Part shown: in pieces, positions 12,051 through 55,647 of the stretch
Layout of the letters: each line of letters starts with the position of its first letter
How positions within the stretch are numbered: the stretch's first letter is position 1
NCBI RefSeq assembly: GCF_036588685.1
Contig: NC_086386.1
Span: 65,844,001 to 65,908,000, forward strand
Source of the DNA: Mytilus trossulus
Taxonomy: Eukaryota
Direction of reading: 5' to 3'
Length of the DNA: 64,000 nt
The notes under the pieces: generated by a model
The model's database searches: none
Seen by the model: the letters and a program-made list of their open reading frames with translations, nothing else
Told to the model about the DNA's origin: nothing
Made by a program: the position numbers and the translations under genes

Positions 12051-12070
12051 AAATATTCCCTTGAATATTT
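12051..12070. other. Fold-back inversion junction of the array
   Basis: ...aaatattc-cctt-gaatattt...: arms are reverse complements around a 4-nt loop, and array orientation switches here. Confidence 0.92.
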
Positions 12071-12267
12071 TTTTAGACCTACTTTCGTATGCAACCGGAT
12101 GTGACGTACCATGATTTGGTGGTGTTACACCTTTAACATAAAAAAAAAAAAAGAAGAAAATTCCTCGATTAAAGACTCTCTCTATTGTATAAGTTGACGC
12201 GTCAGTGCCGGGGCAATGTAAGAAAAAAAAAAAAAAAAAAAAAACTTGTCCAAGCCGAAAAAAAGTA

Positions 12268-23352: not shown

Positions 23353-24171
23353 CTAAAACTTAGTCAAAAGTAATTCTTGTTCATAGAAAGCACCTGTTAT
23401 TTCGTCGCCTTTTAAATCAATTATTTTATAAGTAAAAGGAATTGTATTTAAAACTTTTTCAATTACAAATATTTCTTTAGTCCAACGAGTAGTATAACCC
23501 TTTTCAAATTTACCCTTTTTTTTTGTTATTCTTACTCTAGTACCTACTTCGAATTTAGGTTTTTTAATTTTCTCTTCTTTTTCTGGATATAAATTTTTAT
23601 ACACTGTTAATTCATTTTTTAATTTACTTGCTTGAACAGGTGTCATTTTAATTGAAGAATGTACTGTATTATTATAATTTTTAACTAATTTATCTAATAT
23701 ATCATAATATTTTAAAGTTTCATTAGCAGTAAAGTATTTATACATATGTTGTTTCATTGTTCCTATCCATCGTTCCACTACACTGGATTTTTCTTCATTC
23801 TCAGTTGAATATAACTTTATGTTATTATCTTTTAACAATTCTTTTACTTGTCGATTATAAAATTCGGATCCTTTATCTGACCAAATATATATTGGTTTTC
23901 TTTCTTTAAATAATGTTTTAAATGCTTCACTCACTGCTACTCCTGTTTTATTTTTCAATGGAATCAACCAACCATATTTACTAAAAACATCTATAACTGC
24001 TAATAAATATTTATAGTGTTTATTTTGTTTTGAATATTGTTGTATATCTATCAAATCAACTGCCCATGTTTGATCTATTGAATGAACATAAACACGTCTT
24101 TTAGGAAAAGATTTTATAACTCTATGATGTAATTCATCTGCTAATTTATTTGTTAGATTTGTTTTAGACAT
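23353..24171 (-). CDS. Retroviral-like (RVE, DDE) integrase of the Polinton
   Basis: WAVDLID, AVIDVFSKYGW, IWSDKGSEF, SSVVERW, KGYTTRWTKEIF motifs. Likely start MSKTN (the ORF extends to 24219). Confidence 0.96.
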   Translation of the reverse strand: MSKTNLTNKLADELHHRVIKSFPKRRVYVHSIDQTWAVDLIDIQQYSKQNKHYKYLLAVIDVFSKYGWLIPLKNKTGVAVSEAFKTLFKERKPIYIWSDKGSEFYNRQVKELLKDNNIKLYSTENEEKSSVVERWIGTMKQHMYKYFTANETLKYYDILDKLVKNYNNTVHSSIKMTPVQASKLKNELTVYKNLYPEKEEKIKKPKFEVGTRVRITKKKGKFEKGYTTRWTKEIFVIEKVLNTIPFTYKIIDLKGDEITGAFYEQELLLTKF

Positions 24172-24201
24172 TTTGAAGTAACTAAAATGTTTTTTTTTAA
24201 A

Positions 24202-24423
24202 ATGGATGAAAGAAAACATTGTTCAAAATGTAATGAATACAAGTTACTAAGTGAATATTACAAAGCAAAAGACAAACCACTGGGAGTTAAATCTGCATGT
24301 AAAGAATGTTTAAAACCTTCAAAACAAAATCATTATCAAAATAACAAAGAAAAATATAAAAAAGCTTTTAAAGAATTTATGGAAAGAAATCCTTTTTATT
24401 GGAATTTATATCCAAGAAAATAA
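24202..24423 (+). CDS. Small zinc-finger protein (CxxC...CxxC)
   Basis: CSKC-x22-CKEC, resembling the N-terminal Zn fingers of HNH/endonuclease VII-type proteins but without a nuclease domain. Confidence 0.7.
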   Translation: MDERKHCSKCNEYKLLSEYYKAKDKPLGVKSACKECLKPSKQNHYQNNKEKYKKAFKEFMERNPFYWNLYPRK

Positions 24424-24449: not shown

Positions 24450-27400
24450 ATGGGATCTAAAAAATCCTTTAAAGATCTTATTACTGAAACTACTATTGAT
24501 GATATAGAAGAAATCAATGCAACTAAATACATAAACTTATTAAAAGATAAAATAGTTATTAATCAATTTCCTTTAAAAATAAAGATAATAATAACAAGTG
24601 AATTTACAACTCCTATGGCATTTGATAGAATAGAAAGTCATTACTCTCATCCTGTTAAAGTTGTCCTAACACAAAACAATTTATCTACATTTTACAATAA
24701 TTTGTTAGATAAATTTAAAGCTTGGGTAGATAAATTTCAAGAAAGAGGATCTGGTTTTGTTTTCGATGGTATCAAAAGTGTAAAAGTAAAACTATATAAA
24801 TATGAATATCAAAGAGCTTCATCTTATTTTCCCCTTCAATTTAAATCAAGTAATATTATTAATATCCAAAATAAAAAGGATAATAAGTGTTTTCTTTGGT
24901 CAATATTAGCAAGTTTATTTCCAGCCAATAAAGACAAACAAAGAGTAACAAAATATAAAGAATATGAAAATGAAATTAACATGAAAGGAATTGAATATCC
25001 TGTTTCAATAAAAGATATCCCAAAAGTAGAGAAACAAAATAATCTAAGTATAAATGTATTTGCTTTAGAGGATCAAACAAATAAACAATCTTTACATCCA
25101 GTTTATATATCAAATGTAGAAAGTAAAAACGTAATTGATCTCTTATACATTGAAAGTAACGAAAATACTCATTATTGTCTAATTAAAGATTTAAATAGTT
25201 TTATGTGTGATAAGAATAGAAATAAATCGTTTATATGTAGAAACTGTTTGCAAGGATTTCAAAGAGAAGAAACACTAATAAAACATAAAAAAATATGTTA
25301 TGATAACAAACATTGTAAAACCATAATGCCAAAACCAGGAAAAAATATTCTTAAATTCAATAATCATCATTTTAAAAATAAATTACCATTTGTTATCTAC
25401 TCTGATTTCGAAGCATATAATATTCCTATACAATCCTGTACTCCAGATCCTAATAAATCTTATATAAAACCAATAAGTAAACAAGAAATAAATAGTTATG
25501 GTATTTATGTTCATTCTGATTATCCAGAAATATATAAACCACAATACTTTTCTTATGTTGGTGATGATACAGTAGAAAAATATGTGGAAAAAGTAATGAA
25601 GATATACAAAGAAATAACTTATAAGATCTACCTTAACGAAAAGAAAAAACCAATATTAAATAATCATGAAGAAGATGAATTTCAAGAAGCAACCGGATGT
25701 TATATTTGTGGAGAAGAATTTAAAGAAAGCGAAAAAGTAAGAGAACATAATCATCTTTCAGGTAAATATAGAGGAGCAGCGTGTCAATCGTGTAACACAA
25801 AAGAAGGTAAAGCAACAAAATTAATACCCGTGTTCTTTCATAATGGATCGAATTATGATTTCCACTTTTTAATCGAAGAATTAATGAAATATGAAGATGA
25901 ATATAATAAAGTAAAACTTCTTTCTAAAAACTCAGAAAATTATATTTCTATAGATTATGGATCAAATTATAAAAAATTAAGATTCCTAGATTCATATAGA
26001 TTTATGTTAAAAGGCTTATCAGATATTGCCAAATCAATGGATGAGTTTCCTATTTTAGAAAAAGAGTTTAAAGGTAATATAGCTCTTTTAAAACAAAAAG
26101 GATTCTATCCATATGAATACATAGATTTTATAAAAAAATTTGAAGATAAAAAACTTCCTGAAATAGAAAATTTTTATTCTAAATTAAAAAAAGAAACAAT
26201 TACAAAAGAAGAGTACAAACATGCACAAAAAGTCTGGGAATATTATAATTGTAAAACTTTATTAGACTATCATAATTTATATCTTAAAACTGATGTTCTT
26301 ATCTTAGCCGATGCATTCGAAAAATTTAGAAATTTCTTTTTAGAAAACCATAAAATAGATCCATGCTATTGTTATTCTGCTCCGGGATTGACTTGGCAAT
26401 GCGGGTTAAAATTTACTGGAGTAAAACTAGAATTATTAACTGATGTTGATATGTTACAAATGTTTGAGAAAGGAATAAGAGGAGGATTTTCTGGAGTATT
26501 AGGTCCTAGACATGTAAAAGCCTTCAACAAATATACTTCAAATTATGATAAAGATTATAGAATAATAGATGAACATGAAAAAAAAGAGTGTTTAAAAAGA
26601 TTAAAAGAAGGAAAAGATTTAAATAAATTTTTTGAAAAAAATTATTTGTTGTATCTAGATGCAAATAATTTATATGGATGGGCTATGTCACAAAAACTTC
26701 CTACAGGAGATTTTAAATGGGAAAAAGATTTAAAATATTATAAAGAAATTCCAAAAGGAAGAGGATGTTTAATTGAATGTGATTTAAAATACACAGAAAA
26801 ATGTAAAAAGAAAACATATAAATATCCTTTAGCACCAGAAAAGATGAAAATAAAAAAAGAAGAATTATCTGATTACCAATTAAATCTATTGGGAGACAAA
26901 CCATTAGGTAATGAAGAAAAATTATTTTTAACATTGAGAGATAAAAAAAAATATATAATTCACGATAGCATTTTAAAAGAATATATAAAACTTGGAATAA
27001 AGGTAACAAAAGTTTACAGAACAATTTCATTTAAAGAATCAAATTGGTTAGCAAAATACATAAATTTCAATACAGAACAAAGAACTAAAGCAAAATCAGA
27101 TTTTGAAAAAGATCTTTGGAAACTGATGAACAATAGTTTCTATGGTAAAACATTAGAAAATATCAGAGGAAGAAGTGAAATAAAATTATTTACAGACAGG
27201 GAAGAAGTAAAAAAATATATAAAAAAACCAAATTTTAAAGACTCAATAATATTTAATGATAACTTTGTTGCAATTGAAAATAATGTTACTTCTGTTAAAT
27301 TTAATAAACCTATTTATTTAGGACAGGCTATATTGGATTACTCAAAACAATTAATGTATAGCTTTTATTATGATGTTGTTAATGAATTATGGGAAAAGAA

Positions 27401-27887
27401 TGAATTAGTTGCAAGTGATACTGATAGTATGATTTTGAGTGTAAAAACCAAAGATATTTATAAAGACATGGAAGAAATGATAGATGAACTTGATACGTCT
27501 GGTTATCCAAAAGATCACCCTTTATATTCAGAAAAAAATAAAAAAGTAATTGGTAAATTTAAAGATGAACTTAATGGGAAAATTATGAATGAAATAGTTT
27601 ATTTAAAAAGTAAAGCATATTCTTTTACATTAACAGACACAATGTGTTTAAGTGAAGAAAAAAAATTAAAAGGAATTGGAAAAACTACAATAAATAAAGA
27701 TATTAAATTTGATGATTATAAAGATTGTTTGTTCAATAATAAAACCAAAATGAATAAAATGTGTACAATGAACTCGAGCAAACACAAAATGTTTGTTAAT
27801 GAAGTAAATAAAATAAGTATGTCTTCATTCGACGACAAAAGATATATTTTAGATAATGGAATAGATACTCAACCTTTTGGATTTTAA
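24450..27887 (+). CDS. pPolB: Protein-primed family B DNA polymerase, 1145 aa, intact
   Basis: Exonuclease motifs (YSDFE, FHNGSNYDFH, Y...DV) and polymerase motifs LYLDANNLYG, KLMNNSFYGK, SDTDS. Inserted endonuclease-VII-like Zn motif CYIC...HNHLSGKYRGAACQSCN. Confidence 0.98.
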   Translation: MGSKKSFKDLITETTIDDIEEINATKYINLLKDKIVINQFPLKIKIIITSEFTTPMAFDRIESHYSHPVKVVLTQNNLSTFYNNLLDKFKAWVDKFQERGSGFVFDGIKSVKVKLYKYEYQRASSYFPLQFKSSNIINIQNKKDNKCFLWSILASLFPANKDKQRVTKYKEYENEINMKGIEYPVSIKDIPKVEKQNNLSINVFALEDQTNKQSLHPVYISNVESKNVIDLLYIESNENTHYCLIKDLNSFMCDKNRNKSFICRNCLQGFQREETLIKHKKICYDNKHCKTIMPKPGKNILKFNNHHFKNKLPFVIYSDFEAYNIPIQSCTPDPNKSYIKPISKQEINSYGIYVHSDYPEIYKPQYFSYVGDDTVEKYVEKVMKIYKEITYKIYLNEKKKPILNNHEEDEFQEATGCYICGEEFKESEKVREHNHLSGKYRGAACQSCNTKEGKATKLIPVFFHNGSNYDFHFLIEELMKYEDEYNKVKLLSKNSENYISIDYGSNYKKLRFLDSYRFMLKGLSDIAKSMDEFPILEKEFKGNIALLKQKGFYPYEYIDFIKKFEDKKLPEIENFYSKLKKETITKEEYKHAQKVWEYYNCKTLLDYHNLYLKTDVLILADAFEKFRNFFLENHKIDPCYCYSAPGLTWQCGLKFTGVKLELLTDVDMLQMFEKGIRGGFSGVLGPRHVKAFNKYTSNYDKDYRIIDEHEKKECLKRLKEGKDLNKFFEKNYLLYLDANNLYGWAMSQKLPTGDFKWEKDLKYYKEIPKGRGCLIECDLKYTEKCKKKTYKYPLAPEKMKIKKEELSDYQLNLLGDKPLGNEEKLFLTLRDKKKYIIHDSILKEYIKLGIKVTKVYRTISFKESNWLAKYINFNTEQRTKAKSDFEKDLWKLMNNSFYGKTLENIRGRSEIKLFTDREEVKKYIKKPNFKDSIIFNDNFVAIENNVTSVKFNKPIYLGQAILDYSKQLMYSFYYDVVNELWEKNELVASDTDSMILSVKTKDIYKDMEEMIDELDTSGYPKDHPLYSEKNKKVIGKFKDELNGKIMNEIVYLKSKAYSFTLTDTMCLSEEKKLKGIGKTTINKDIKFDDYKDCLFNNKTKMNKMCTMNSSKHKMFVNEVNKISMSSFDDKRYILDNGIDTQPFGF

Positions 27888-37887: not shown

Positions 37888-40800
37888 CATTAATGAATTG
37901 TGTCTTATTTATTTATTTATTAGTCAGCTGTCCGACTGATCATTGGCGTATTGGTGGTTTTTTAATACTCATTTGCATTACTGTGATTTTTTTATTAAGA
38001 ACATTGTATTAAACATTTGAAAAGTCCTTCGTGCAAACTTATAGGAAGCACTTATAAAACCTAAAAGAAGTACGTGATACATTCTGAAATATGGAAGAGT
38101 GCAGTTGAAAACTTTTCTTTTTATCTTGCTCTCCCCATGTGTGTCAGTGGTTTCATTTTAACCTGTGTGTGCTATAGCAATCTAAGCTGAGAGGCACAAG
38201 TTAGACTCTGATGATATGCCTATTTGTTTAGCGATTTTCACATGATATATAAACTGAAGTATAAGTTCGAAAATATTTGATAAGTACATTGTCCGGTTCT
38301 GTGGTGTAGTGGTTATACTAGTAACCCGAATTTAACTTGAACGGACAAAAACGTGTTAACGCTATTTAAATGAGATTGATCATTATTTGATAAAGATTGA
38401 CAAAAATTAAAAATTATATTTAATTCATTTCAATTCATATCAATTCATTTTAACGCCAGTCAAAGAGATTTCTCTGCGGTGAATCAATTGAAATCAAGTT
38501 GCTGGTTAGTTGCGTTAAACTAATAGGCCACGCCCCCGTTAAACTATTTCAAACATGCATTAATTCGTTTTAAACATGGATGAGACCCGGGCTTTTTACA
38601 GGTAAATCACCCAAGCAAAACGACCTCGATGTATCTATCGTCTTTTGTTTCAAACTTTAAATGCGTCGGTGCATTACGTTTGCGCGCATTACCATTACAT
38701 TTGCACGCGTGGTTTAAAAATGTCAAACTAGGGAATCTGTTGAAAATAAATATAGTTAGATGGATAACATAAATTTATAACGATGGGCAAGTTGATTTAA
38801 GTTTAAAGACCTAGACTGTCTATATATCGGCATACTCTCACGTTTTTTAATGTTTTAAAAGAAAACATATATTTACGTTTTGGGCATTAAATATAAGTCT
38901 ACTTACCAAATTGAAATGAACATAAACTTTGTTAAAAAAAAATGGAAAAGAAACATTCTGCATTGTTGCTTTCATATAATTTTATTTCCTATACATTTGA
39001 GTGGAAATTTCTAAGTTAAAACTGATTGTAGTATAGATAAAATATTCCATCTAGGTGCTCTCGGTGAAGTTCGCGTTACATATTAAAATGAATTTCATTG
39101 GTCGGACCGTTTGCAAACTTTCAATTCAATACACAATATGGAGTCCAGTTCGGAAAAAGAAATCAAATTAAGACTCTACGATGTCCGATTAAACAAACAG
39201 AATTTAGAAAAATAACACTTTTACGATTCTTCCAACCACGACCAAAATATCTATCTTTTTCTCCGCTGAAAATCATTATGAGAACAAGTCAAAAATTGCC
39301 GGAGCTTGATTTATGATGCATACGAAACTTTAATAAATAATTATACGGTTTGTATTTTTCCAAATAACTACTATATCCGATAAAAATCGAAAAAATAAAT
39401 TATCGGTAAAAACTACCGATTTTTCTATGAGACAAACATTATCGTTATATGAGTCGAATTTGTAATATAGATTCATGAAGGACAAACCATATCCTCATGT
39501 TTTTTTATGCAGCACTAGTAAGCATAGTTCGTCTGTTCTCGCTTCAAACCAAACCATCATAAATACACCAGAGATGACTAAAATGGAAGTCTTTTCGCTC
39601 ATTGAGATTTTTTGGTAGGTATTAAGCTTCAATTCGACCATTAACTACCGTAAATTTTAGATTCTTTCAAAATTACGAAAAATATGTTATAATCCTTGAC
39701 CTTCTCAAAGCTTATACTTCGTTCAGTCGATTGTGTGAAAGTTTTTTTTAAGAAACCGGTCTTTTAATGCAAAAAAAAAAAATAAAAGATAAAAGCGATT
39801 TTTGTTTGAAGTAACGAATCTCATTCTTACAAGAAAATGAAAGTTTTCGTGTTTTAGGTTGTGCTGAAGCAAACGTAACAGTTGAAATCAAAGTTACACT
39901 CCGAGATTACACTAAAGACATTTCGCTAGCACACATGGGACTAGATTTATTAATTGTTCATTTGCAGGTCAAAATTAATAATTATGCAAAACAAATGATA
40001 AAACTTCCCAATTTAAAATTGAGAAAAATCCGACAGGAAACCAAAGTACAAAGGTACGGCATTTATTTGAAAACAATCTCCATCCAACTTCAAAATGTGA
40101 GGTAAATCGATAAGCTTACGCTAGCCAAGCAACCAACAGACAAAATAAATCTTGCCTCTCCGATCAAGACTATCTATAGACACGGAATAAAAAATAACGG
40201 AAAATAACAGCATGTTAGAATGGTTACAAACACATGTATGCAAACATGAAGCAGCTGTTTCTTTACTGAACTGGTCAGTGGTAATACAAAGCCAGGGTTT
40301 CAAAAAGAGGAAGAAAAAGAAAAAGACATTTAAACATGCTAAAATTTATGAAAAGGCAAATCAGACATAGTGTTTAACTAAAATTGAAAAAAAAAGGATC
40401 ATAATAGTCTATAATTTGTAAACATTTATTTCAGAAAGCTAACAACAAAATGAAAGGAAACTATGTATTGCTTAAACACATTGATCAGAGCCGTAACAGA
40501 CTCATGTTTGAAATTTTAAAACAAAGTCACAGTACAAAGGCTTGTCTTCATATCAAATTGTTTTCACGGCGAATGTCTTGCAATAAGCAAACTCCATTAC
40601 TCCGGTGTCGCCCCGGTATAATTTTGCGTGATCCATGCATTCCCCATTTCCATTCTCAATTTTGTGTTTCTGAATTACTTGTCTTTTGTTCATTTACTTC
40701 CCTACTAAATGTCTATAGTCTAAGTGTTAATTTTCATTTGTAAATGTCTGGTTTCGCAATGATGCATGTCCACAAATATCCAGACATTGTGCGGAAAAAT

Positions 40801-42229
40801 ATAGTTTAGAAGATATTATTCTATGCTGAATACAGAAAACATATAGTCGTTTCTTCAGGGAAGATTTGAACTCTAACATTAAAGAGTACCAAACTGGCTT
40901 TTCTTTTTGAGTATTTCCATCCGGTGTCTTACATTTAAGGGTTTAACTTGTATTAACATGAATAAGTCGTGTCAACTTACTGTCAAGATAGACGCCTTTA
41001 TAGAAAATAAAGGACTGTGGGGTAAACATACACGGGACCTAATCGAACACAAAGTTAGAGCTTAACAAAAATACAAATTATCAATGGTCAGCGTTTTTAT
41101 TCCTGGTCATCTTTATAGTCGCTAGCTATAGAGGGTCTTCAACAATGAAAGAATCTGAGAGTACTTAAGTTTCTGACAGCTAGTTCACATTGCTACGTTT
41201 AAAGTCTTCCTGTCCGTCATCCCGCAATCTGATAATTTGATTTTCTGTCTCAGGACCTGCGCATAATGCCATATATAAAATACTTGCCACTGAACATTGA
41301 ACCAAGTAAAATCAATACACATCGTTTCATATGTAAAAAAAAACAATCTACAGATGATTATGCATTTCTTAGTTATAGTTAGATTCCCTTTTGTGGGAGT
41401 TGAACACTTTGCGGGACAATTTTCTTCTCATGGGAAGATATATTTTTCCCATGGGAATATTAGTTTTTTCTTTTTTTTCCTTCAGAATTTGTAAAAGTGC
41501 TCTGAAATATCGAAATGGACTGACAATCATGCACTAGTAACCAATGACTGGAACAATTTAACAGGCATTTCAATAAATTAAAAGTATTTCAATCATACAC
41601 TCAAAAGTCTTTTTATATCGTTGAATGATTGATAGAAATTCTACCGTCCAGCAGATGATTTTACAATTTGAATCTTTCACCTTTGTTTTCGGTCAATATC
41701 ATCGTGCATTTCATGTAATAGTGTTTGCTGAACTGTCAAGTATCAGAAACATGTCTTTTGAATTTCAGAATTAAAATTATAATTTTGTTTTAATCTATAA
41801 TTAAACATGGGGAATGTCGAATCGTGTTTTAGATTGTTTTCTAATTTTAACCTTTTAATTTCGTGAATTTACATCATAATTATTATGAATGTAATTATTC
41901 TTTTTAGTGTAACTCGATATGCGTGTTTTTCGCCACTACAAAGATGTGCACGTACTTTTTCTAGATCTTTTATAACCTCTCAGGTAATTTTCAAAGAAAA
42001 TCCAGAGTTTTCGGCATTTACAAGGACGCGTACGGATGAGGATTAAAAATATAATCTTTGTGATATATTCACTTGTACTTTACCCGTAGGCTGTCTTCGT
42101 GTACTGTAATTTATGGTTTAAAGGAATACGATTACTTTATTTCTCATAAAACTTCAATTACTAGTTATCAAGAACATACATAAACATAACTATAAGGTAA
42201 AATTAATACATGCATGTGTAAACGATACA

Positions 42230-42700
42230 ATTAAATTAACTTGGAGGACTGACTTTCCCATTTATAACTTTTACATAGTTTTTCTTATATTACAATATTT
42301 GATGAGTTTAACTGTTGATCAGCTTTAAAGATATAAGGGTTTGACTAACAATAGTTCCTTAAAAATTTCCTTCTTTTTATATAGTTTATATGTTCTACAA
42401 TTCATAATGTAATGGTACTCGTCATCAATGTTGTTTGTGTCATAGAGACGACATATTCTGTCTTCTCTGTGTAAATCCTGACACCTTCTGGACTCAATCG
42501 GCAACTACCACATCTATATCTGCGTAATATATGAATTTAGAAATGTAAAAGGGAGTTTTCTAATTGATAATTCTTTTTGAAAATATGACAGCATTATGTT
42601 TTATGCGATTCTGCATGAAAGCAAAGAATTCTTCTTGAAACTGGTCCTTGGGGTTTTGTTTAATACATTTTGACACCCATTATCACAAACTGTGCACAAT
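42230..42700 (-). pseudogene. Degenerate 3' fragment of a non-LTR retrotransposon ORF (RTE-X/CR1-like C-terminus)
   Basis: Hand translation with frameshifts gives IKQNPKDQF...RYRCG..PIESRRCQDLHREDRICRLYDTNNIDDEYHYIMNC, a decayed RxC..C....DE.H....C finger. Confidence 0.65.
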
Positions 42701-45004
42701 TACGGAAAACTAATATACGTCCTTGCTGTGCACTATAATTCGAAATAGTTGTAAATTGCAATTTTTTTGAATTTCTATTTTTTCCTCACTAGTTAGGTGA
42801 AAGTATGTTAAAAATTTATTGTAAATTGCGAAAATGCATTACGAGCATAAATCTATAATTTTAAGTTAGAATTTAGAGTCTCAACTTTTTTTCAAAATCT
42901 CTTTAATATTACTGATGTATTATTTATGTTTATGTCAAAGGCGTTTGATTGGATAAAAGTTAAAGTTAGGCGTGGTTTTTGGTAACTTTCCTCCAATCAA
43001 CTGGCCCATTCGACAAACCTGTGTGCGCTGATGCGTGTAAACTGGGTATTGTAACGGTACGTGTCTTACATCAGAACCTATCGTGCGTGACCAATGTTTA
43101 TTGTATAATTTCTTGTCACGTGGTCAAATTATCTGAAATACAAGTTCTAAAGGTGCACTACAGCAGAATTACAGTTTCAGTTGTTATAATTCAGACACAA
43201 ATTAATATGGTTATTTTGAAATCTGCTGCATGGTTTATTCCATTAGCAATCATATTCAAGAAAAGTTGTAAATCTTGAATATTCTGTAATATCTTTATGA
43301 AGCGTGATTGAGAAGTAGATTCACACAGATACTGCAATCATTGTCATCTTTAAAATTTACTTTGCATGCACCAAATTTCTAATCCATTTGTTTAGAACAA
43401 TAAAATATGTTTAAACTACAAAATATCTAAATGAGATTACATAGGAATAACTTGTGGTGTATTCATGTATACTAGTATGTAATAATAATAAAAAGAAACC
43501 AACAGCACTATTTGACGAAGACGAAGACGAAATAAAAGATTGAATTCTAACGTCCAGTGACATATATTACAATGATGTCGAAACAGAACTTGAAATCGAC
43601 AATAGGTTTTCATAGAACCGTCGCTTTTCCAAAGAATTCACGCTAAGTTGCGATTTCACAACTTCGGGTTCGCATTATAGTTATACATGTACAAAATAAC
43701 TAACAATAAACAAATTCTGATGATTTCTTCAACTGTTCTAGGACTTTCTAGTTGTAATATAAATCTGTGGTTTTTCTATATTCGTACTTTCGACGAAGCA
43801 AAGCAGTTCGATCTAGATCTGGACATGTATGCATTAAACATTTACAATATTCAATAGTTGTACATTTTTTTGTAGAACATGTAGAAAAATCCGTCTTTTC
43901 GGATAAAATCTTAATTTACGTACCATTGTAAAATTGAGAACGGAAAATGAGGAGATGCATATACGGACCCTGGATTTAAATCAGATATGATCTGGCGTTT
44001 TTTTTCTTTTTTCAAAATACATATTTTTAATTGTGACTATCTTTAGTTTCGAATCTTTCTTTCATTCTAATTAATTTAGTTTAAATGAAAATAAGGAAAT
44101 TGGAATTAAAACACTGTTGAAGAGAAACTACATATTCGGGTTAAATTCACCTTAGTTTGTTAATTCAAGTTTGACATCTAACATCATAATCCGTAATCCA
44201 CATTTACCCGACAACCTTAAATTGTTTATTGTATTTTATCAATCGAATATCCTCACACAAGAGACTGAGACAAAATAAGTTATTTGTAAGGGTATTTATC
44301 AAAACTGAAATGATTGAAAATATCTTTGGAGAATATGAATTTGCCTAATAAGCGAATAATTATAATACATATATTTCAACATCTTCAATAGAGAGATTAC
44401 TGATAAGATGTCCAAAATATATGTACAGGTATACATTTTGCGATTAAGTGCTCTATAGTATGTCAATGATATCGAATGCCCGCTGAGTGTTAAACATGTA
44501 TGACACTGCTGGTTTTAATTTTCTGACTCAAGTATAAATTTAAGAAAAGTTAATAGTTTCTGAATATTTTTAGATTCAATATTTTATCATTGTTATTATT
44601 TTTTAAAGTCTCACCACATACAAACATAAAATGAGAATCACAGAACTAAACAAAACATTTAAACATTTGCATTGTGTGCATCAATCTTTAAAAAGATAAA
44701 TGAGACGCGTATAAGACACAATATATAAATATAAACAAATTTTTACTCATTTATATTTAAATTTACAGTGTCCGTATATAACAAATAAAATGAAACACCT
44801 TTTTATATAAGAACAAGTGAAATAAAATGCCGTTTCTTTTCAATAAAATATTGTTGATGTTTTTGACATCTATTGCAGCAACATTGTCGTTATTGAATTA
44901 ATATATAAATTTTTCGCTATTTGATACTTATAAATTAAAATCACGGTTAAGCTTAATGTATTATTATATGTCTATAATGGGCATTTTAAAAGGACAGGAA
45001 TATA

Positions 45005-45325
45005 AAAAAGAAGATGTGGTATGATTTCCAATAATAAATTTGTTTATTAAAGTGTCAATTTGACAACAGTCCACAAGAGACCAAAATGACAGAGACATTA
45101 ACAAATATAGGTCACCATACGGCCTTCAACAATGAGTAATGCCCATACCGCAATGAATGAAAAATAAATATGTAAAACATAAACAAACGACAACTATACT
45201 GAATTGCAGGCTCCTGACTTGGGACAGGCGCATACATAAATAATGTGGCGGGGTTAAAATTGTTAGCGGGCTCCCTACCCTCCCCCTAGTCTCGATCAGT
45301 GGTATAACAGTACATGTACAACATA
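45005..45325 (+). repeat. Interspersed host repeat (AAGATGTGGTATGATT...ATAGGTCACC..GGCCTTCAACAATGAG); inverted partial copy at ~46002-46090
   Basis: Two related copies in opposite orientation plus a stub near 47000. Resembles an abundant mussel repeat (recognition only). Confidence 0.6.
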
Positions 45326-45666
45326 ATAACGAAAAAAGAGGGTTTGGATGGGGTTAAATGATTAAAGAATAATGCCCTTGAAAAATGAAGATAAGAGAAT
45401 AATGGGCATAAAAAAAAAAGATTAGAGAAATGCATGGTCTAAAAATATAATGAACATTGAATGATTAATAAAAGAAAACGCTAAAAATTAACTGGTAACA
45501 GAATTTTCCCTTCTTAAAATTTAAAGAAAATTATCAAAGTTATCATTGTAAAAATATGATAAAAGTGAAAACAATCTTGGTAAACCTTTTTTGGTTTCGT
45601 GATAACAGACTATAGGATTCAGTCAATATGAACTGGTTTCCGATACTTCTACTCGGGCTTTAAATT

Positions 45667-45973
45667 CAGTGGCGGATCCAGAGGGGGCGTAGAGGGCGTA
45701 CATCCCCCTTTTGACCGGACTTTTCTTTTTAAAATGATTAATCAGACTAGACTTCGTGAATTAATAGGGAGATACAGCATCTAAAATGTCCAACCCTTAC
45801 ACCTTACCAGCAACTATAAAATATGCATGCCCCACGTCAGGAACCGTTTAAAAAGTGCATATTTCACTTATTTTATGTTTGTAGTCCTAAAAAGGGGCCA
45901 AAACAATATTTCGCCTTGCTTCCCTCGTTACAAAACTACAGCCCCTCTTTCAAAAAACCTGAATCCGCCCCTG
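45667..45973. mobile_element. ~307-bp MITE with CAG(T/G)GGCGGAT(C/T)CAG TIRs (hAT-like)
   Basis: CAGTGGCGGATCCAG ... CTGAATCCGCCCCTG. Flanks tttaaatt/tttatatc could be a decayed 8-bp TSD. Confidence 0.65.
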
Positions 45974-48900
45974 TTTATATCTGACTATGCGGTTGACTTT
46001 AGCTCATTGTTGCATGCCGTACAGTGACCTATAGTTGTTAATTTCTGTGTCATTTGGTCTCTTCGAAGAGTTGTCTCATTGGCATCTTCTTAATTATGTG
46101 TAGTCAAAATCACTGGAAAGAACTGATGAGAATTTGGACTTGTTACTTTATGGAACTAGCACTTAAATCATGCAGAACAATACACACCAACACGTCATTG
46201 TTGAGAAACAAATGAAAGCCTTGCTGTTGTTTGGAAATCACCGTTCTCATTCATTTAAAAGAATGATTTTTTCAAAGATTAAAGAAAACTGGGGAAAAAA
46301 TTAGAGAATAATGCGTAAAAAATTACTTTTAAAGAATAGACTTATTTTTTGAAGATTAGAGAAAAAAGGGATGAAAATTAAATGTTTACAGAATAACAGA
46401 CCCCCCCCCCCCCCCCCCCCCGATTCAGACCCTCCTATAAGAACCATTTTAAATAGGCTTAACTCATTAGATGGACAAAAAGATGGAGGGGATGGTGTGT
46501 AATATTTGTAACTGGGCGTTAAGCAATCATGAATCATTTGATCTATTATATTTTCATTTCTTTATTCTGTAATTTAAAGTGCTTATCCCATTATCATCTT
46601 TATTTCTGTAAACTCTATTTATTTACTTTCATAGCTTCATATTTGTACATGTACATGGTATTTGAAACAGGAACAATATACCGTCGTATATTACAAAAAT
46701 TGAGAATGAAAATGAGGAATGTGTAAAAGAGACAAAAACCCGACTATAGAGCAGACAAAAGAGGAAGGCCTAAATTACGGGTCTTCAATGTAGCGAGAAA
46801 CTCATGCGTATACATACATTCATTATTGTATGCACATATCATGCTTGTACCAGAGACATATAATACAATTATATGTCTCTGGATAAACATAATTATTTAG
46901 AATTAAAAAGAGTATAGTTATCAATAAGTTTAAAGTGAAAAATCGCGAATTATCCCTTTATGGCTTGATGAAGATCTTCATCAAAGAACGAATGAATAGA
47001 AGAAGATGTGGTATGCTTGTCAATAATTTAATTCACCGTACATGTGGAATACCGTACGATAGTTTTTTGGTCTAAAAAAGAATACATCTACTACATGTCT
47101 TTGATTTAACAAATGATAAAAGATCTGGCATAAAAACGTGGTTCTGAATATAATCTAAAAATTGAAGAAAAAGGCAGACTAAGACGTTATACAATTTAAA
47201 GAATACCAATCTTAAAGTTTTATAACTTAGAGGTATACTGTCCCCCTTCTTTTAACCTACAAGAAAACTTCACGAGAGCCGATGATTAAATATCCACCTT
47301 GTTTTTCCGTATATATATATATATATTAAATAACTGAAGAAGCAATTCAAAGGATATTCAATTTGTTTCAATATTGCCTAAAACTGAGGCTACTATAACT
47401 TTTATACATGAAGTAGTCTCAGCCGAAAACAATACATTATATTGATAATATAAGCAAGTGTGACAAACCAAATTGAATCACAAATTTGTTGTTTGGGATT
47501 GTTCATGGTTCACTTATATTCCTTTCACGGATTTGGCTATACTTTTGGACCTTTTGGATTATAGCTCTCCGTCTTTTATATTAAATTTGCTTTTGATTTC
47601 ATATATTTTGGCCTCAAGCATCACTGAAGAGACATGTATTTTCGAAATGCGCATCTGGTACAAGAAAATTGGTACCGTTAATTGTATTCTATATTAACCA
47701 GTGACACGTGTCCTAATTTTTAAGAAAAGGGATAGAAAAAGTATGAAACAAAAATATCCGGTTTTTCAAAACTATATTTTCAAAATGCATTGCATGATTT
47801 AAACCGATTTAAAGTGTTTCATTTATTTTATGTTTGTGCGTTTACGAAAAAATGATAGAAAGTTAAACTTCAATGTTCATGACTTACAAGTATTATATTT
47901 CTTGTAAAATTGATAGATGAGCGGTTTTCACAAATACCGAACATAAGAATATATCGTAAACGTCAATTAATGAACAAGCAACCCAACGAGAAAAATATAA
48001 TTTCAGAGGCATCTACATGTACATCTATAAGTAGTTTTGATTTAGAGAAATCATTCACAAGTTCATTGCCATATGATTCTATTCAGATTTGTGCGTTTTT
48101 TCGATTTACGAATAAGATACAAAAAAATAATTGAAGCAAAAGAAAGAAAGAGACATGAAATAACGAATTAACATAAGTTTACAAATACATACCTAGATGC
48201 ATTTACCAAAACAATATTTGAACTTATTAATACATTTTTTCATATTATTGTAATTTTATGTTTATGTACCCGATATGGAGTTCTTCTAAAATTAAAAAAA
48301 CACTTGAATGGGTATTTCTGGTGTATATACATGTATCACACTTGCTATCTACATGTACAATATACGGAAATGACACGGCTGGGTATTGTAAAGTTACTGA
48401 AGGTAGATTACTGGCAGGTGTATATCCCCGGGCGAAGAATTTACTGATTTGTCAAAACGGTTAGATGTAATTTGTCATTTTGTTAAGGTTTGAATCGCGC
48501 TCATCTCTTTTTTTTTATTATATGAATTGCACCAATAAATGAAACTTGACACATTCCCCATTTCCATTCTCAATTTTATTAATTGTGTCATATTTATCTC
48601 GAAACTATTAACCTATTTACACGTACATGTAACATTAGAATACTTACTTCAACTGTTGAATAACTTTATAATTACTAAAATTCAAAATTATGTACTTCTC
48701 CTTCCGTATGCTATGTTTTTTTGTGTCAATTCTATCTTTCCATCAGGTCCAGAGTGCACTTTTTTTGTCAGTCTAAGTGCTCTAAGGAGGCCCTTTCAGT
48801 TTGAGATTTCTGTACCTACATGTAAATACCTAAAAGGACCTCCTCAGTGCACTAAGAAGAAACATTTGAAAACAAGTCTATGATATTTGCACAATTAAAT

Positions 48901-51718
48901 GATAGTTTTATTGGCGCTAATGAATGTTGCAGTTTTTATGATAAAGTTATGCAAAAAAAAATTCGCGTAATTAACTTGTGGTGCAAATTAATTCTTTTTT
49001 AGCCAAACTAGATATCGGCCTTCAAAACATTGTGTATACACAAACAAAGCAAAATTTATCTTTTACGCAGTCTAGCCGGAGAATACAAGTTTTTGCAATT
49101 TGTGAAGGATTTTAATTTTAGAATGTAATGAACAAGTAAGAAGATCGTTAAATCGGAAAATGAGCTATGCACGATGAAAGGGAAAAGTTTGGTGCGTCGA
49201 TAAAAATTTCATGGATTCACTTGATAATTGTACAGTTTCAAGTCTTTAAATAACACCCATTTGTAGAACTGATTATTTCGATCCTTCAAATATGCATGTG
49301 TAGAATAATAATAAAAAAAATATACTATTAAGTCTCTTTCATATTGATACTGTAGATTTGTATTTTAACATCGATTGCAAACATAACGTTCAGTGAGAAA
49401 TATTTCATGTATTCGTACAGAAAACAAATCAACTTCTTTCAGAATACAATTGATTGGTTATTGAAGTAAATGATTTGCGACAGAATCAGTGACACTTGGC
49501 CAGAAGCGTACCTCTAAAATAAAGAAATATAAAAAAAAAAGGTTACTCATAATGGACTTTTTACAGTCAATGCCGAAAATATTAAATACATCGATTTAAA
49601 TTATGTACACAATAAATATTTTTTGTGTACAAAGTTTTCCGTGTCTACATTTAGATACGAGTATCATATAGAAAACCATCATGTTATATATTTAACTATT
49701 TTATTTTCAACAGATTCACAAGTTTTGCATTTTTAGACCGCGTGTGCATATATGTTTTAATGTTTTTATTTTAATTCCTTAATTATATATGAACATGATA
49801 CGTGTATTATTCATTCGTTTCAACGTTTTAAATTGTGAAGCATGTGAATTCAATAAGACTATACGCATTTAAAGTTTGAAACAAAAAACGATAGATTACA
49901 TCGAGGTCGTTTTGCTTGGGTGATTTACCTGTAAAAAGCCCGGGTCTCATCCATGTTTAAAACGAATTAATGCATGTTTGAAAAAGTTTAACGGGGGCGT
50001 GGCCTATTAGTTTAACGCAACTAACCAGCAACTTGATTTCAATTGATTCACCGCAGAGAAATCTATTTGACTGGCGTTAAAATGAATTGATATGAATTGA
50101 TATGAATTAAATAAAATTTTTAATGTTTGTCAATCTTTATCAAATAACGATCAATCTCATTTAAATAGCGTTAACACGTTTTTGTCCGTTCAAGTTAAAT
50201 TCGGGTTACTAGTGATATATATATATATTAATTAAATTAATTATCACGTCTGCTTTACACGCAGAAGGTCGCGAGTTCGAACCTCGCCAGAACCTGGTTT
50301 GTTTTTGCAAATGGGCACCCCATAACTTTTAATAATGAAAGAAATTGTTCGTGTAACTGCAATTGTTTGAAACCGAAAATTTGGCTAGATATAATTCAGA
50401 AATATTTGTTAGCACCCAAGGTCATGTAGCAATCTATTGAAAAACCTATCATCTCCTAAACAGTATGTATACTGAGGCAAATGTAAAGTCTATATAGCTT
50501 TTGGGAGATGACAGAATGGTTCAGAAACTGACATTTGGTACGACGTAACATTATCTAACGTGTTATATATCATACTGAATGGCGGTTAAATTGTGTCAGT
50601 TGAAGAAAGAAGAAAAAAACGAGAAAAAAAAAACCAACCACAGCAATTGCTTTTAACGTGTTACAATTTATAGTAGCTGTATTGAGAACTTTTACAGTTT
50701 TAATGAAAATCCGAATAGTAAATCCTACCGTTTTCTCAAATTGTTAAACTTCGGCATCGAATTAAAAGAGGATAACTATACATGCAATTGTGCCGATAAT
50801 ATAGCTAACTTAAACAAGTTGACAAATGATAGGCGTACATTTACTAAAAAGCAAAACAAATAGGGGCCTATTCAAGTGCACCTTTCATGATGCACTCGCC
50901 TTAAATGCAATGAAACAATAAAAGTCATTGCTGCCTGAGAATGATTGTTGGTTCCGTATGATACATGTAGCAAAATGACATATCTATTTTATGCAATTTC
51001 CTCTCGATTTTGAAATTATTACAATTTGAGATTTCGTAGTAAACCGTCTAGGAAATGAAGTGTTGTTAATCCTGCTTTCTTTTTCTTCTTCTTTTTTTTT
51101 TAGTTAAAAAGAGCTATTTAGGTGTAATACCACCATTGATTTTCCCCTATTAGTCTTTGTTAAATTTGCACTTTTCAAAAAATTGTGTAGAATTTATCTT
51201 TGTTTCAAATAAAGAAATACTTGGCATGAGTAAAGTTTTATCCTGTCCAGTTCTATAGAAAAAGTTTCACATAACATTTCATTGCATATAAGAAAATAAC
51301 CATCATTGGAAGTTAACCAATCAAATTTCTCCCCTTATGCTATCTGTGTACAAGGTTTAGTCACCATGCAACCTCAAGATTACAAAATTTTCTATAGAAA
51401 TCGCAAATAAAAAATAATGGTATTTTGAAATACCCAAGACATTTGTTTATGACTCAGAAATAGTTTTACTGCAATAAAATGTAGGATTAATTACCTACAA
51501 CGGTCAAATTCAAGGGAATATTTGTTTAGACCTACTTTCGTATGCAACCGGATGTGACGTACCATGATTTGGTGGTATTACACCTTTAACATAAAAAAAA
51601 AAAAAGAAGAAAATTTCTCGATTAAAGACTCTCTCATTTGTATAAGTTGACGCGTCAGTGCCGGGGCAATGTAAGAAAAAAAAACCAAAAAAAAACTTGT
51701 CCAAGCCGAAAAAAAGTA

Positions 51719-52197: not shown

Positions 52198-52270
52198 GGT
52201 TCTGTGGTGTAGTGGTTATCACGTCTGCTTTACACGCAGAAGGTCGCGAGTTCGAACCTCGCCAGAACCT
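52198..52270 (+). tRNA. trnV-TAC: tRNA-Val(TAC)
   Basis: Intact copy upstream of E3. Confidence 0.95.
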
Positions 52271-52494
52271 GGTTTGTTTTTGCAAATGGGCACCCCATAA
52301 CTTTTAATAATGAAAGAAATTGTTCGTGTAACTGCAATTGTTTGAAACCGAAAATTTGGCTAGATATAATTCAGAAATATTTTTTAGCACCCAAGGTCAT
52401 GTAGCAATCTATTGAAAAACCTATCATCTCCTAAACAGTATGTATACTGAGGCAAATGTAAAGTCTATATAGCTTTTGGGAGATGACAGAATGG

Positions 52495-54173
52495 CTTTTT
52501 TTTGGTCGAGTGGACCTTGATGTGAACGGACGTACATTTTGTCGTATGGAAAAATACACTCTGTTTATATGTTATTGCTCGGATTTCCAAGCTAGATAAA
52601 GGATTAATGTGATTCTGACTTGTAACAGCAGTAAGTCTTTTTCATTATATTGCAAAATTTCGTCGTAAAGTAACTTTTGTAGACATGTTAAGATCATCGT
52701 GTAAAATGAGGTCCTAAAGGGGAATTTATTAGGATTGTGTTTTTTATTCCATCATGGAAAGATTACCGTTATTATTGACAAGTACGATACATAATGCTTG
52801 TGAACAATTTCGTAACATTACATTTACAGTGCACGGAGAAAACGATAAAGCAAGAATATCAATTATGTTTACTAATCAAGAGAGTATCAAAAGTAAGCGT
52901 AAATCGAATTCTACAATTAAACGTGACAATAAAAGACTGAGGGAATATAATGAAAACAATAGTGACACTATAATAAAAGAATGTGCCACAAATACTCAGT
53001 GTTCAAATAATGCAGATAATTATGTCGAATTAGTTAGCGAAATGGACGTTGAAGTTACCCCGAGTGGTACCCCAACAACGTTAACAGGTGAAATTCAATC
53101 AGCTGAGAATGTGAATATTGATTTGTGTGTACACAAAACAGGTAAATCGCCTGACTTATCGGAATGTGTAAACAATAACAAAGATGTAAATACAGGTGAA
53201 AATGTATGTTCAGCAGACAATATTGAAGAAATTAAGGTAGCACAGGAAGATTGGAATTTGGATGATAATTCTGATTTCTTTGCTACTTTTAAGTTCCGTA
53301 AATCAAAAGATAGTACATGTGACAAACCGCCGGTTTCAAATATTTCTGTTAAAACGAAAGAAATTAAGAAATCAAATATAAGAACTGAAGAAAGTGAAAC
53401 AGATGATGCTAATATGAAAACCGTACATGATGCAAGTGATGATGAAGAATGTGAATTAATTTCCAAATTTGTCCTGAAAAAAAGTAAATTTACAATTGGT
53501 AAACTGATTTGCAAAATTGAAAAAACGGGTAGACTTATTATTTTGGATATAGACTCAAACACATACGAAGAACTAGTTAGAAGTGACCGATATTACAAAA
53601 AGTTCAATACAGTATTGACACAAGACTTCAGTGATGTTCGTGAAACGCAGCATATGAATGCTGAAATTGAACAGGCAATACTTCAGATGATAGACTATGC
53701 TAAAAATAAAAAATTGTTGTAAATAAATTGTTGATAAATATATATTCTTTGTGAGCATGCGTGTATGTATTTGTAAGATTGAGTGTATGCTAGCTTTTGT
53801 TTTTTGCCTGCGGAATTATTTATGACTGCTGTCACATAGAAATTGTTTGATATTGATGAATATCAACGTTTATGATCGTGAACTCGCATGGTGGAATGGT
53901 TTCCAGCCCCGTACGAACATTTGATTATTTCGTTTCAATTTTCGTCTCTTTATTTTCTGTAAACATTGAAAGACAATTACCAGTTAATTTCATACTTTAT
54001 ATTGTATTCTGCGTAGGTTTCTAATATAAGTTGAATGATTGAGCTGCATGAAAGATTAGTGTGAGGTAGCATGATAGTATAGGGACTTGATGTTTTCCAA
54101 TAATATGTTGTAAAGTGATGTAGAAGATGATAAAGATTTGTGCAATAAATTTTATCAAGATAAAAAAAAAAAA
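52495..54173 (+). mobile_element. Polyadenylated single-ORF, RT-less retro-element E3, 3' end joined inside tRNA-Val(TAC)
   Basis: Array homology stops at 52494. 259-bp leader, 322-aa ORF, ~440-bp trailer, then AATAAA...AAGAT-(A)12 joined to TCACGTCTG, the same junction as E1/E2. Confidence 0.88.
52754..53722 (+). CDS. Intact 322-aa protein of unknown function carried by E3
   Basis: Uninterrupted ATG-TAA ORF in AT-rich DNA. Compact N-domain with basic KSKRKSNSTIKRDNKRLR, acidic disordered middle, folded-looking C-domain. No RT, endonuclease or CCHC motif. Confidence 0.85.
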   Translation: MERLPLLLTSTIHNACEQFRNITFTVHGENDKARISIMFTNQESIKSKRKSNSTIKRDNKRLREYNENNSDTIIKECATNTQCSNNADNYVELVSEMDVEVTPSGTPTTLTGEIQSAENVNIDLCVHKTGKSPDLSECVNNNKDVNTGENVCSADNIEEIKVAQEDWNLDDNSDFFATFKFRKSKDSTCDKPPVSNISVKTKEIKKSNIRTEESETDDANMKTVHDASDDEECELISKFVLKKSKFTIGKLICKIEKTGRLIILDIDSNTYEELVRSDRYYKKFNTVLTQDFSDVRETQHMNAEIEQAILQMIDYAKNKKLL

Positions 54174-54225
54174 TCACGTCTGCTTTACACGCAGAAGGTC
54201 GCGAGTTCGAACCTCGCCAGAACCT
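54173..54225 (+). pseudogene. 3' fragment (positions 21-73) of tRNA-Val(TAC) after E3
   Basis: ATCACGTCTGC...CAGAACCT directly follows the poly(A). Confidence 0.92.
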
Positions 54226-55647
54226 GGTTTGTTTTTGCAAATGGGCACCCCATAACTTTTAATAATGAAAGAAATTGTTCGTGTAACTGCAATTGTTTGA
54301 AACCGAAAATTTGGCTAGATATAATTCAGAAATATTTGTTAGCACCCAAGGTCATGTAGCAATCTATTGAAAAACCTATCATCTCCTAAACAGTATGTAT
54401 ACTGAGGCAAATGTAAAGTCTATATAGCTTTTGGGAGATGACAGAATGGTTCAGAAACTGACATTTGGTACGACGTAACATTATCTAACGTGTTATATAT
54501 CATACTGAATGGCGGTTAAATTGTGTCAGTGGAAGAAAGAAGAAAAAAACGAGAAAAAAAAACCAACCACAGCAATTGCTTTTAACGTGTTACAATTTAT
54601 AGTAGCTGTATTGAGAACTTTTACAGTTTTAATGAAAATCCGAATAGTAAATCCTACCGTTTTCTCAAATTGTTAAACTTCGGCATCGAATTAAAAGAGG
54701 ATAACTATACATGCAATTGTGCCGATAATATAGCTAACTTAAACAAGTTGACAAATGATAGGCGTACATTTACTAAAAAGCAAAACAAATAGGGGCCTAT
54801 TCAAGTGCACCTTTCATGATGCACTCGCCTTAAATGCAATGAAACAATAAAAGTCATTGCTGCCTGAGAATGATTGTTGGTTCCGTATGATACATGTAGC
54901 AAAATGACATATCTATTTTATGCAATTTCCTCTCGATTTTGAAATTATTACAATTTGAGATTTCGTAGTAAACCGTCTAGGAAATGAAGTGTTGTTAATC
55001 CTGCTTTCTTTTTCTTCTTCTTTTTTTTTTAGTTAAAAAGAGCTATTTAGGTGTAATACCACCATTGATTTTCCCCTATTAGTCTTTGTTAAATTTGCAC
55101 TTTTCAAAAAATTGTGTAGAATTTATCTTTGTTTCAAATAAAGAAATACTTGGCATGAGTAAAGTTTTATCCTGTCCAGTTCTATAGAAAAAGTTTCACA
55201 TAACATTTCATTGCATATAAGAAAATAACCATCATTGGAAGTTAACCAATCAAATTTCTCCCCTTATGCTATCTGTGTACAAGGTTTAGTCACCATGCAA
55301 CCTCAAGATTACAAAATTTTCTATAGAAATCGCAAATAAAAAATAATGGTATTTTGAAATACCCAAGACATTTGTTTATGACTCAGAAATAGTTTTACTG
55401 CAATAAAATGTAGGATTAATTACCTACAACGGTCAAATTCAAGGGAATATTTTTTTAGACCTACTTTCGTATGCAACCGGATGTGACGTACCATGATTTG
55501 GTGGTATTACACCTTTAACATAAAAAAAAAAAAAGAAGAAAATTTCTCGATTAAAGACTCTCTCATTTGTATAAGTTGACGCGTCAGTGCCGGGGCAATG
55601 TAAGAAAAAAAAACCAAAAAAAAACTTGTCCAAGCCGAAAAAAAGTA

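Follow-up and report, generated by a model that had tools for sequence, protein, structure and literature searches.

How can an element that encodes no reverse transcriptase (RT) insert itself at a fixed nucleotide of a tRNA gene, and why should it carry a protein of its own? The question is raised by E3, a 1.67-kb element found in a stretch of 64,000 nucleotides of Mytilus trossulus DNA. This stretch, called here the window, is part of contig C14 of a 1.3-Gb assembly (G000), against which the searches for copies were also run. The window is made up of tandem tRNA-Val(AAC) and tRNA-Val(TAC) genes, with 27 tRNA genes called by ARAGORN, and it also contains E1 and E2, fragments of long interspersed nuclear elements (LINEs). 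The answer that we consider probable is that E3 is a non-autonomous, protein-coding poly(A) retroposon that uses the ORF2 protein of a co-resident LINE, and that its own protein is likely a cis-acting ribonucleoprotein (RNP) or nuclear-import factor. Much of this idea was already contained in an earlier note on the window, several claims of which are revised below.

An insertion bounded by a long duplication

All the features of the locus lie on the plus strand. An intact tRNA-Val(TAC) gene (52198-52270; called by ARAGORN, Rfam tRNA score of 69 bits) stands 5' of E3. Directly after the GGTTA of its D-loop, at TCAC, starts a segment of 276 bp (52219-52494) that is found again downstream of the element (54174-54449), with 275 of the 276 positions identical. 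The downstream copy opens with a 5'-truncated tRNA-Val (approximately 54174-54225). Eleven further array units show the sequence that ends in ...GACAGAATGG continuing uninterrupted into TTCAGAAACTGAC, past the point where E3 starts. Taken with the 276-bp repeat, these uninterrupted units imply that E3 is an insertion bounded by a target-site duplication (TSD) of 276 bp, which is absent from the earlier note and is identified here. The tRNA gene upstream of E3 is intact because the duplication spans the rest of the gene from the D-loop on.

The true span of the element is 52504-54173, its first nucleotide being at GGTCGAG. It is preceded by a junction filler of 9 nucleotides, CTTTTTTTT (52495-52503), that belongs neither to the element nor to the target, and that is not found in the two closest copies, L002 and L003. 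The 5' end had given the impression of a natural start, at position 52495: a natural start is now supported, since three copies of E3's own family and eight copies of a second family begin at the same nucleotides, but its position moves to 52504. From there, a 5' untranslated region (UTR), or leader, of 250 nucleotides (52504-52753) begins with the fixed family terminus GGTCGAGTGGACC...GGACGT; it is followed by an open reading frame (ORF) of 322 amino acids, intact from ATG to stop (52754-53722), by a 3' UTR, or trailer, of 439 nucleotides (53723-54161) with AATAAA at 54144-54149 and a terminal AAGAT at 54157-54161, and by a poly(A) of 12 A's (54162-54173) joined to the TCAC of the truncated tRNA-Val(TAC). 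The shape of an mRNA, as first described, is present in all its parts. On the sense strand, beyond the 322-aa ORF, there are zero ORFs of at least 60 amino acids.

The coding content was also read correctly from the start: Pfam gives no domain in the E3 ORF, nor in those of 12 family members, hence no RT, endonuclease or CCHC zinc knuckle, while the ORFs of E1 and E2 contain a zf-RVT domain.

Copies of E3 in other tRNA genes

Copies of E3 were obtained by a DNA search of the assembly followed by local re-alignment. Three copies, 98-100% identical, are full length; they start with (G)GTCGAGTGGACC, end with ...TTTTATCAAGAT(A)n, and use the homologous position of the D-loop. E3 itself (L001) lies in a tRNA-Val(TAC) gene at GGTTA^TCAC, with its 276-bp TSD and 9 nucleotides of filler. 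Copy L002, on contig C1, is 99.6% identical to E3 and lies in a tRNA-Asn gene at GGTTA^GCGC, with a TSD of 34 bp and a filler of 8 nucleotides; copy L003, on contig C11, is 98.0% identical and lies in a tRNA-Ser(AGA) gene at GGTTAA^GGCG, with a TSD of 91 bp and a filler of 4 nucleotides. Since the tRNA genes, the duplications and the fillers all differ, these are independent insertions, and not segmental duplicates. We call the group family A.

Multiple copies with a common 5' end, which the first reading of the locus called for, thus do exist. Besides these three, the family counts 5'-truncated copies (C9, C5, C15, L057 and L058) and older, degraded copies of E3 type (C7, C4, C10, C12 and C13). 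Some of the older copies, namely C7, C9, L057 and L058, are found at non-tRNA sites. The 12-A tail, the 276-bp duplication and the 5'-truncated copies are hallmarks of target-primed reverse transcription, and the sequences point to E3 as a young, full-length copy of family A that was recently inserted.

The one interrupted member that might suggest an intron is the copy on C7, in which 472 bp (L038:3991-4462) break the alignment. An intron was considered here and rejected: the terminal inverted repeats of the insert, beginning with GGGCCATTCCAGTTAAT, and its short duplication indicate a miniature inverted-repeat transposable element (MITE). This old copy lies at a non-tRNA site and lacks poly(A), and its TSD, of about 72 bp, has diverged. 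The copy on C4 has an insert of 3.2 kb, within which no similarity to ORF2 was found.

Copy numbers must be read with some care. A 223-bp tail of E3 in a tRNA-Thr-like gene on C15 was later multiplied with its array, with a period of 1187 bp. Fixed periods of retroposon copies are seen at C15:5445958-5454029 (1187 bp; L007-L012), at C10:13469250-13506359 (3165 bp) and at C9:15439658-15467673 (1879 bp); such copies result from duplication of the tandem array, not from transposition, and the apparent copy number is inflated by them.

Families B and C

The first 450 nucleotides of E3, that is, the leader and the first 65 codons, are about 70% identical to many loci in other tRNA arrays. The eight copies of family B that were examined are all full length, with 1.73-1.80 kb and one ORF of 283-314 amino acids. 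They start with (G)GTCGAGTGGACC, as in family A, and end with ATAATAAAGAT(A)n. All eight lie at GGT(T)A^ in a D-loop, in genes for tRNA-Met, Lys, Asp, Thr, Gly, Gln, Val(AAC) and Val(TAC), with TSDs of 14-71 bp and a filler of a few bases rich in A and G. Comparison of families A and B gives an identity of about 69% for the 5' UTR and of 62% for the 3' UTR. Synonymous sites are saturated, and the similarity of the 5' UTRs therefore points to a constraint on the leader.

A third family, C, has the same plan (1.7 kb, a single ORF, poly(A), flanking TSDs), and its protein is 28-30% identical to that of E3, with the same architecture and a long Asp/Glu run in the middle. Its members, such as L050 (C4:59442200), L051 (C10:2379400) and L052 (C1:65624000), are dispersed at non-tRNA sites, and their tail, GATTGAATAAA(A)n, differs from those of A and B. 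The motif TCGARYGSACC is found near the 5' terminus in all three families and in the autonomous LINE presented below, and GGACGT, at about +25, is common to the three families; the two together are a possible internal promoter. A protein search of the same genome gives 126 matches, mostly open frames of about 280-350 amino acids with no internal stops, of which a subset was inspected individually. On these comparisons, E3 is best classed as a member of family A, within a superfamily of poly(A) retroposons of 1.7 kb with a single ORF; this superfamily has been found so far only in Mytilus.

The families bear directly on the most ordinary explanation of an mRNA-shaped insertion, which is that E3 is a processed pseudogene or retrogene, the mRNA of an intron-containing host gene having been copied accidentally by LINE machinery. 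The AATAAA and the poly(A) are what one would expect of it, and homologues are annotated as hypothetical proteins in M. galloprovincialis, M. edulis and M. coruscus. However, accidental copying does not account for insertions that arose independently several times and yet have a single fixed 5' end and one specific target. Moreover, the members examined in the three families are all intronless, poly(A)-tailed and TSD-flanked, the single interrupted copy contains the MITE described above, and the tail of family B matches that of a LINE. The earlier note had itself raised the origin from a single-copy, intron-containing gene: copies turn out to be multiple, and no intron-bearing parent gene is found among the members inspected from the 126 matches. 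We regard a retrogene as very improbable.

Even less probable, to the point that we give it hardly any weight, is that E3 represents only a part of a longer autonomous element, either its 3' portion or an additional ORF. The presence of the LINE fragments E1 and E2 in the same array could invite this reading, which had also been raised before. It is contradicted by the TSD, which bounds exactly 1.67 kb, and by both ends being common to three copies. A search of 1.84 billion proteins yields homologues that never exceed 325 amino acids, an ORF2 adjoins none of the members examined, and in the autonomous element both the ORF1 and the 5' UTR are different.

LINEs that use the same nucleotide

If E3 borrows its enzymes, a lender should be found at the same target. 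Both LINE fragments of the window are 5'-truncated 3' parts of Tx1-like elements. E1 (6599-7637, minus strand) lies in a tRNA-Val(TAC) gene at GGTTA^TCAC; its duplication measures 5 bp and its tail is AATAAAGAT(A)13. E2 (10203-11683, plus strand) lies in a tRNA-Val(AAC) gene, also at GGTTA^TCAC; here the duplication measures 15 bp and the tail is GAATAAAGAT(A)10. The tails of both end with AATAAAGAT(A)n. As noticed at first sight of the locus, the poly(A) of E3 joins GGTTA^TCAC in the same sense orientation as in E1 and E2, and the terminal AAGAT-(A)n is common to the three.

A search with E2 as query, after which the sequence of C19 was read, located a full-length LINE with two ORFs, L049 (G000:C19:1983000-1991000, minus strand). 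It lies in a tRNA-Thr(CGT) gene at GGTTA^GAGC, has a TSD of about 290 bp, and ends with TTGAATAAAGAT(A)9. Its ORF1, of 570 amino acids, has an RRM-like N-terminus and CCHC knuckles; its ORF2, of 1300 amino acids, has the domains Exo_endo_phos, RVT_1 and zf-RVT. There are four near-identical full-length copies of this type, on C19 and at C15:5407710, C6:6204987 and C5:66947313; the type looks recently active. The tRNA arrays that hold these four copies also contain RT-less elements, and the D-loop target is common to tRNA-Thr, Ile, Val and Gln. Other ORF1 lineages, 35-48% identical, are found in the same arrays, and a second autonomous lineage, L037, lies in tRNA-Gln, its ORF2 being 46% identical to that of L049. 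In all, the GGT(T)A^ site of the D-loop is used by the autonomous-type LINEs E1, E2, L049, L045-L048 and L037. In one array, tRNA-Thr-like genes of a single type carry the autonomous LINE and a truncated E3 tail, both inserted at an identical nucleotide.

The target is the GGT(T)A^ of the D-loop of many tRNA species, and not that of tRNA-Val alone. The proposal that E3 is moved in trans by a tRNA-Val-specific ORF2 must be amended accordingly: LINEs with an apurinic/apyrimidinic endonuclease (APE) and an RT do exist at the same site, but their target is wider. These presumed partners fit the architecture of Tx1-clade LINEs (APE, RT and a C-terminal zinc-binding region in ORF2, RRM/CCHC in ORF1), and are called Tx1-like here on the basis of that domain architecture. 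Their ORF1 and 5' UTR differ from the ORF and the 5' UTR of E3; they resemble E3 only in a short motif at the 5' terminus and in the very end of the 3' tail.

The length of the duplications deserves a remark of its own. Those of 276-290 bp, of E3 in the window and of L049 on C19, run from the D-loop past the 3' end of the tRNA and regenerate an intact tRNA gene upstream, while short ones, of 5-35 bp, destroy the target gene. TSD length may affect how well insertions are tolerated, and long TSDs that rebuild the tRNA gene would explain the tolerance of such elements in tRNA arrays.

Probable mobilisation in trans

A shared 3' tail is the classical sign that links a LINE and its parasite. The last 150 nucleotides of family B are 78% identical to the tail of the LINE L037 (z = 14.6), a score that none of 300 shuffles reaches. 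Such a score, far above chance, indicates that LINE and parasite share their tail. In family A the link is weaker: we infer a partner because the insertion nucleotide is identical, the orientation and the variable, long TSDs agree, and young autonomous copies exist. Since the young copies of family A are 98-100% identical, this partner must be active now. We consider it well supported, though still an inference, that E3 is mobilised in trans by the ORF2 of a tRNA-targeting, Tx1-like LINE.

The following sequence of events would account for the observations. The 1.67-kb unit would be transcribed from its own 5' end, the terminal motif and the 5' UTR suggesting an internal promoter of RNA polymerase II type; the transcript would receive its poly(A) downstream of AATAAA and serve as mRNA for the 322-aa protein. 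The endonuclease of a co-resident Tx1-like ORF2 protein would nick a tRNA gene just after the GGT(T)A of its D-loop, and its RT would turn E3 RNA into DNA by target-primed reverse transcription. A second-strand cut 5 to about 290 bp downstream would generate the variable duplications, of which a long one would regenerate an intact tRNA gene upstream. The E3 protein would stand in for the ORF1 protein (ORF1p), coupling the RNA of the element to the borrowed ORF2 protein (ORF2p).

A two-domain protein under selection

The protein has three regions. The N-terminal domain (residues 1-70) is strongly conserved and basic, with an isoelectric point of 9.9; it is predicted to form a helix, a beta-hairpin and a helix, with a KRK-rich stretch, at a predicted local distance difference test score (pLDDT) of about 90. 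The KRK-rich stretch, at residues 46-61, would predict that the protein is imported into the nucleus. The middle (residues 71-228) is acidic, variable and predicted to be disordered. The C-terminal domain (residues 229-322) is conserved and folded, with four strands and two helices (pLDDT of about 95). Pairwise Nei-Gojobori comparisons between element lineages give ratios of nonsynonymous to synonymous substitutions (dN/dS) of 0.05-0.16 for the N-terminal domain, 0.2-0.8 for the C-terminal domain and about 1 for the middle: the two terminal domains are under purifying selection. Because selection acts on both folded domains between element lineages, the protein is proposed to act for the element itself, most likely, by analogy, as a cis-acting RNP or nuclear-import factor that substitutes for ORF1p.

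The search for relatives leads back to the same genus. The profile search of 1.84 billion proteins returns 62 cluster representatives, none longer than 325 amino acids, and those with a name are all from Mytilus. A word-indexed search gives the same picture: the named homologues belong to M. galloprovincialis, M. edulis and M. coruscus, and the remainder are short contigs. Neither a sequence-profile search of the PDB with the E3 protein nor a Foldseek comparison with the PDB gives a match, and a search of the ESM Atlas with the C-terminal domain gives no lead.

Family members are also encoded on ENA/Logan contigs of 1.0-1.9 kb. Among the Logan read assemblies, contigs with an E3-type protein measure 1.4-1.75 kb, close to the length of the element; such lengths would fit either full-length transcripts or unitigs bounded by repeats.

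Weighing the partner and the protein

Several results weigh against the proposed roles of the LINE and of the protein. The first concern the tail: compared with the tails of E1, E2, L049 and L037, that of E3 has only AAGAT(A)n in common and is otherwise not significantly similar, and a genome search with its last 143 nucleotides gives 18 matches, all of them E3-type copies or short truncated tails, and no LINE. Family A is also low-copy, with only three full-length copies. With regard to the protein, the ORF1-like role is argued by analogy only, and dN/dS values taken pairwise from element copies are no more than approximate. The best VIA-align score is a Z of 4.8, with no known RNA-binding fold, the polo-box and Pur-alpha-like rows being within noise. 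Finally, hhalign gives a probability of about 0.1% for a relation between the family profile and the autonomous ORF1s of 570 and 439 amino acids.

The tail results could mean that the partner of family A is another LINE, undetected or extinct, with a matching CAAGAT tail, and the older A-type copies at non-tRNA sites (C7, C9, L057 and L058) go in the same direction. We find this improbable. Family A agrees with the known autonomous lineages in the nucleotide of insertion, in orientation and in having long duplications of variable length; the 143-nt query, for its part, turns up no LINE with an A-type tail; and the four near-identical autonomous copies satisfy the need for a partner that is currently active.

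The hhalign result, together with the absence of CCHC knuckles in a protein whose autonomous counterpart has them, goes against the suggestion of the earlier note that the protein might be a divergent ORF1: no relation to the autonomous ORF1s can be detected. On the same grounds, the possibility that E3 is a HAL1-like, ORF1-only derivative was rejected, tblastn also giving no match between the ORF and the ORF1 of the partner.

A protein unrelated to the ORF1 of the LINE, with an orphan fold, could also do something else altogether. E3 might well be mobilised in trans while its protein is an antagonist or competitor of the LINE, for instance by sequestering ORF2p, or a cargo, or a protein of benefit to the host. 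The acidic, disordered middle, which evolves neutrally or fast, is compatible with this, as is the fact that the superfamily has persisted while the 3' tail and the target behaviour changed among A, B and C. However, only mobile copies carry this protein, and the simplest reason for selection to act on it is that the encoding copy gains from it; in addition, young copies as a rule keep an intact ORF. Such a role seems to us unlikely, if somewhat less so than another partner LINE.

A more specific version of the proposal that the protein serves its own element can be put forward tentatively, as a conjecture with more doubt than confidence attached to it. An orphan two-domain protein, evolved or captured, would functionally replace ORF1p; the element would hijack the ORF2p of several LINE lineages; and an exchange of 3' tails would have given rise to the families A and B, specific to the tRNA D-loop, and to the non-specific family C.

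Relation to known systems

To our knowledge, nearly all known LINE parasites are either non-coding, such as SINEs (short interspersed nuclear elements) and SVA, or retain the ORF1 of a LINE, such as HAL1 and HeT-A, and we know of no protein-coding LINE parasite with its own hijacking factor described for non-LTR (non-long-terminal-repeat) systems. In the full-text literature, Repbase being outside the search, no description was found of the E3 family or of D-loop-specific LINEs in Mytilus.

The closest analogue appears to be HeT-A of the Drosophila telomeres: it is a Gag-only non-LTR element that obtains its RT from TART or TAHRE, with a protein that is under negative selection and is thought to be needed for its own transposition (PMC5537684). 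Both HeT-A and E3 are RT-less, protein-coding, target-specific elements with poly(A), both have autonomous elements at the same target, and both have a protein under selection. However, HeT-A encodes a Gag/ORF1 that can be recognised as such and is related to the one of TAHRE, whereas the E3 protein shows no relation to the ORF1 of its presumed partner. HeT-A also joins chromosome ends with no nick being made, while E3 uses an endonuclease site inside tRNA genes and is flanked by TSDs.

HAL1 (half-L1) and other internally deleted LINEs resemble E3 in being short and LINE-dependent, with one ORF and no ORF2. But the ORF of HAL1 is the ORF1 of L1, while the ORF of E3, its 5' UTR and most of its 3' UTR do not come from the autonomous elements sampled.

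In crocodilians, the LINE partner in the pair SINEU/Tx1-Mar was inferred from a common target preference (Kojima 2015, PMC4494074). The reasoning is the one used here, a non-autonomous retroposon at the same specific target as Tx1-type LINEs implying mobilisation in trans. SINEU elements are short and non-coding with a small nuclear RNA head; E3 has 1.7 kb, is mRNA-like, encodes a conserved protein, and has no small-RNA head detected by Rfam. That E3 itself be a SINE was rejected for its length of 1.67 kb, the T-runs in its leader, its conserved protein and the lack of any Rfam match inside the element.

As to the presumed partners, Tx1-clade LINEs with specific targets include Keno in U2, Mutsu in 5S and Dewa in the spacer of tRNA-Leu (PMC3706591, PMC4494074). 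They have in common with the Mytilus elements the combination of APE, RT and zf-RVT, and a strict choice of site in multicopy small-RNA genes. Dewa lies in the tRNA-Leu spacer (PMC3706591), whereas the Mytilus site is inside the D-loop, in the coding part of many tRNA species. The Dictyostelium element TRE5-A and the yeast elements Ty1 and Ty3 also take tRNA genes as safe, multicopy landing sites; they insert near these genes by means of RNA polymerase III factors, and not at a fixed nucleotide (PMC3706591), whereas the junction of E3 is nucleotide-precise within the tRNA gene.

Two aspects of the system seem to us of general interest. An element without RT has kept an unrelated protein under constraint in lineages with different tails and different target behaviour, which makes testable the question of what, beyond a 3' tail, an RNA needs in order to gain access to the RT of a LINE; if the conjecture on ORF1p replacement and tail swapping is true, the E3 superfamily would be a protein-coding "super-parasite" of LINEs with a dedicated hijacking factor. 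The specificity of the partner LINEs, on the other hand, is broad yet precise: many tRNA species are targeted, each at a single D-loop nucleotide. It bears on target recognition by APE-type endonucleases and on ideas of safe-harbour integration.

Other features of the window

The tRNA array of the window has two large gaps without tRNA genes. The first contains, on the minus strand, an ORF with an rve integrase domain (23353-24219), adjoined by an ORF of 1145 amino acids with an Endonuclease_7 match (24450-27887); the second extends over 38295-50295. The orientation of the array flips at approximately 11990-12110, around a near-perfect palindrome in the spacer, and, relative to the first 10 kb, the strand assignments of the tRNA-Val(AAC) and tRNA-Val(TAC) genes are flipped in the remainder of the window.

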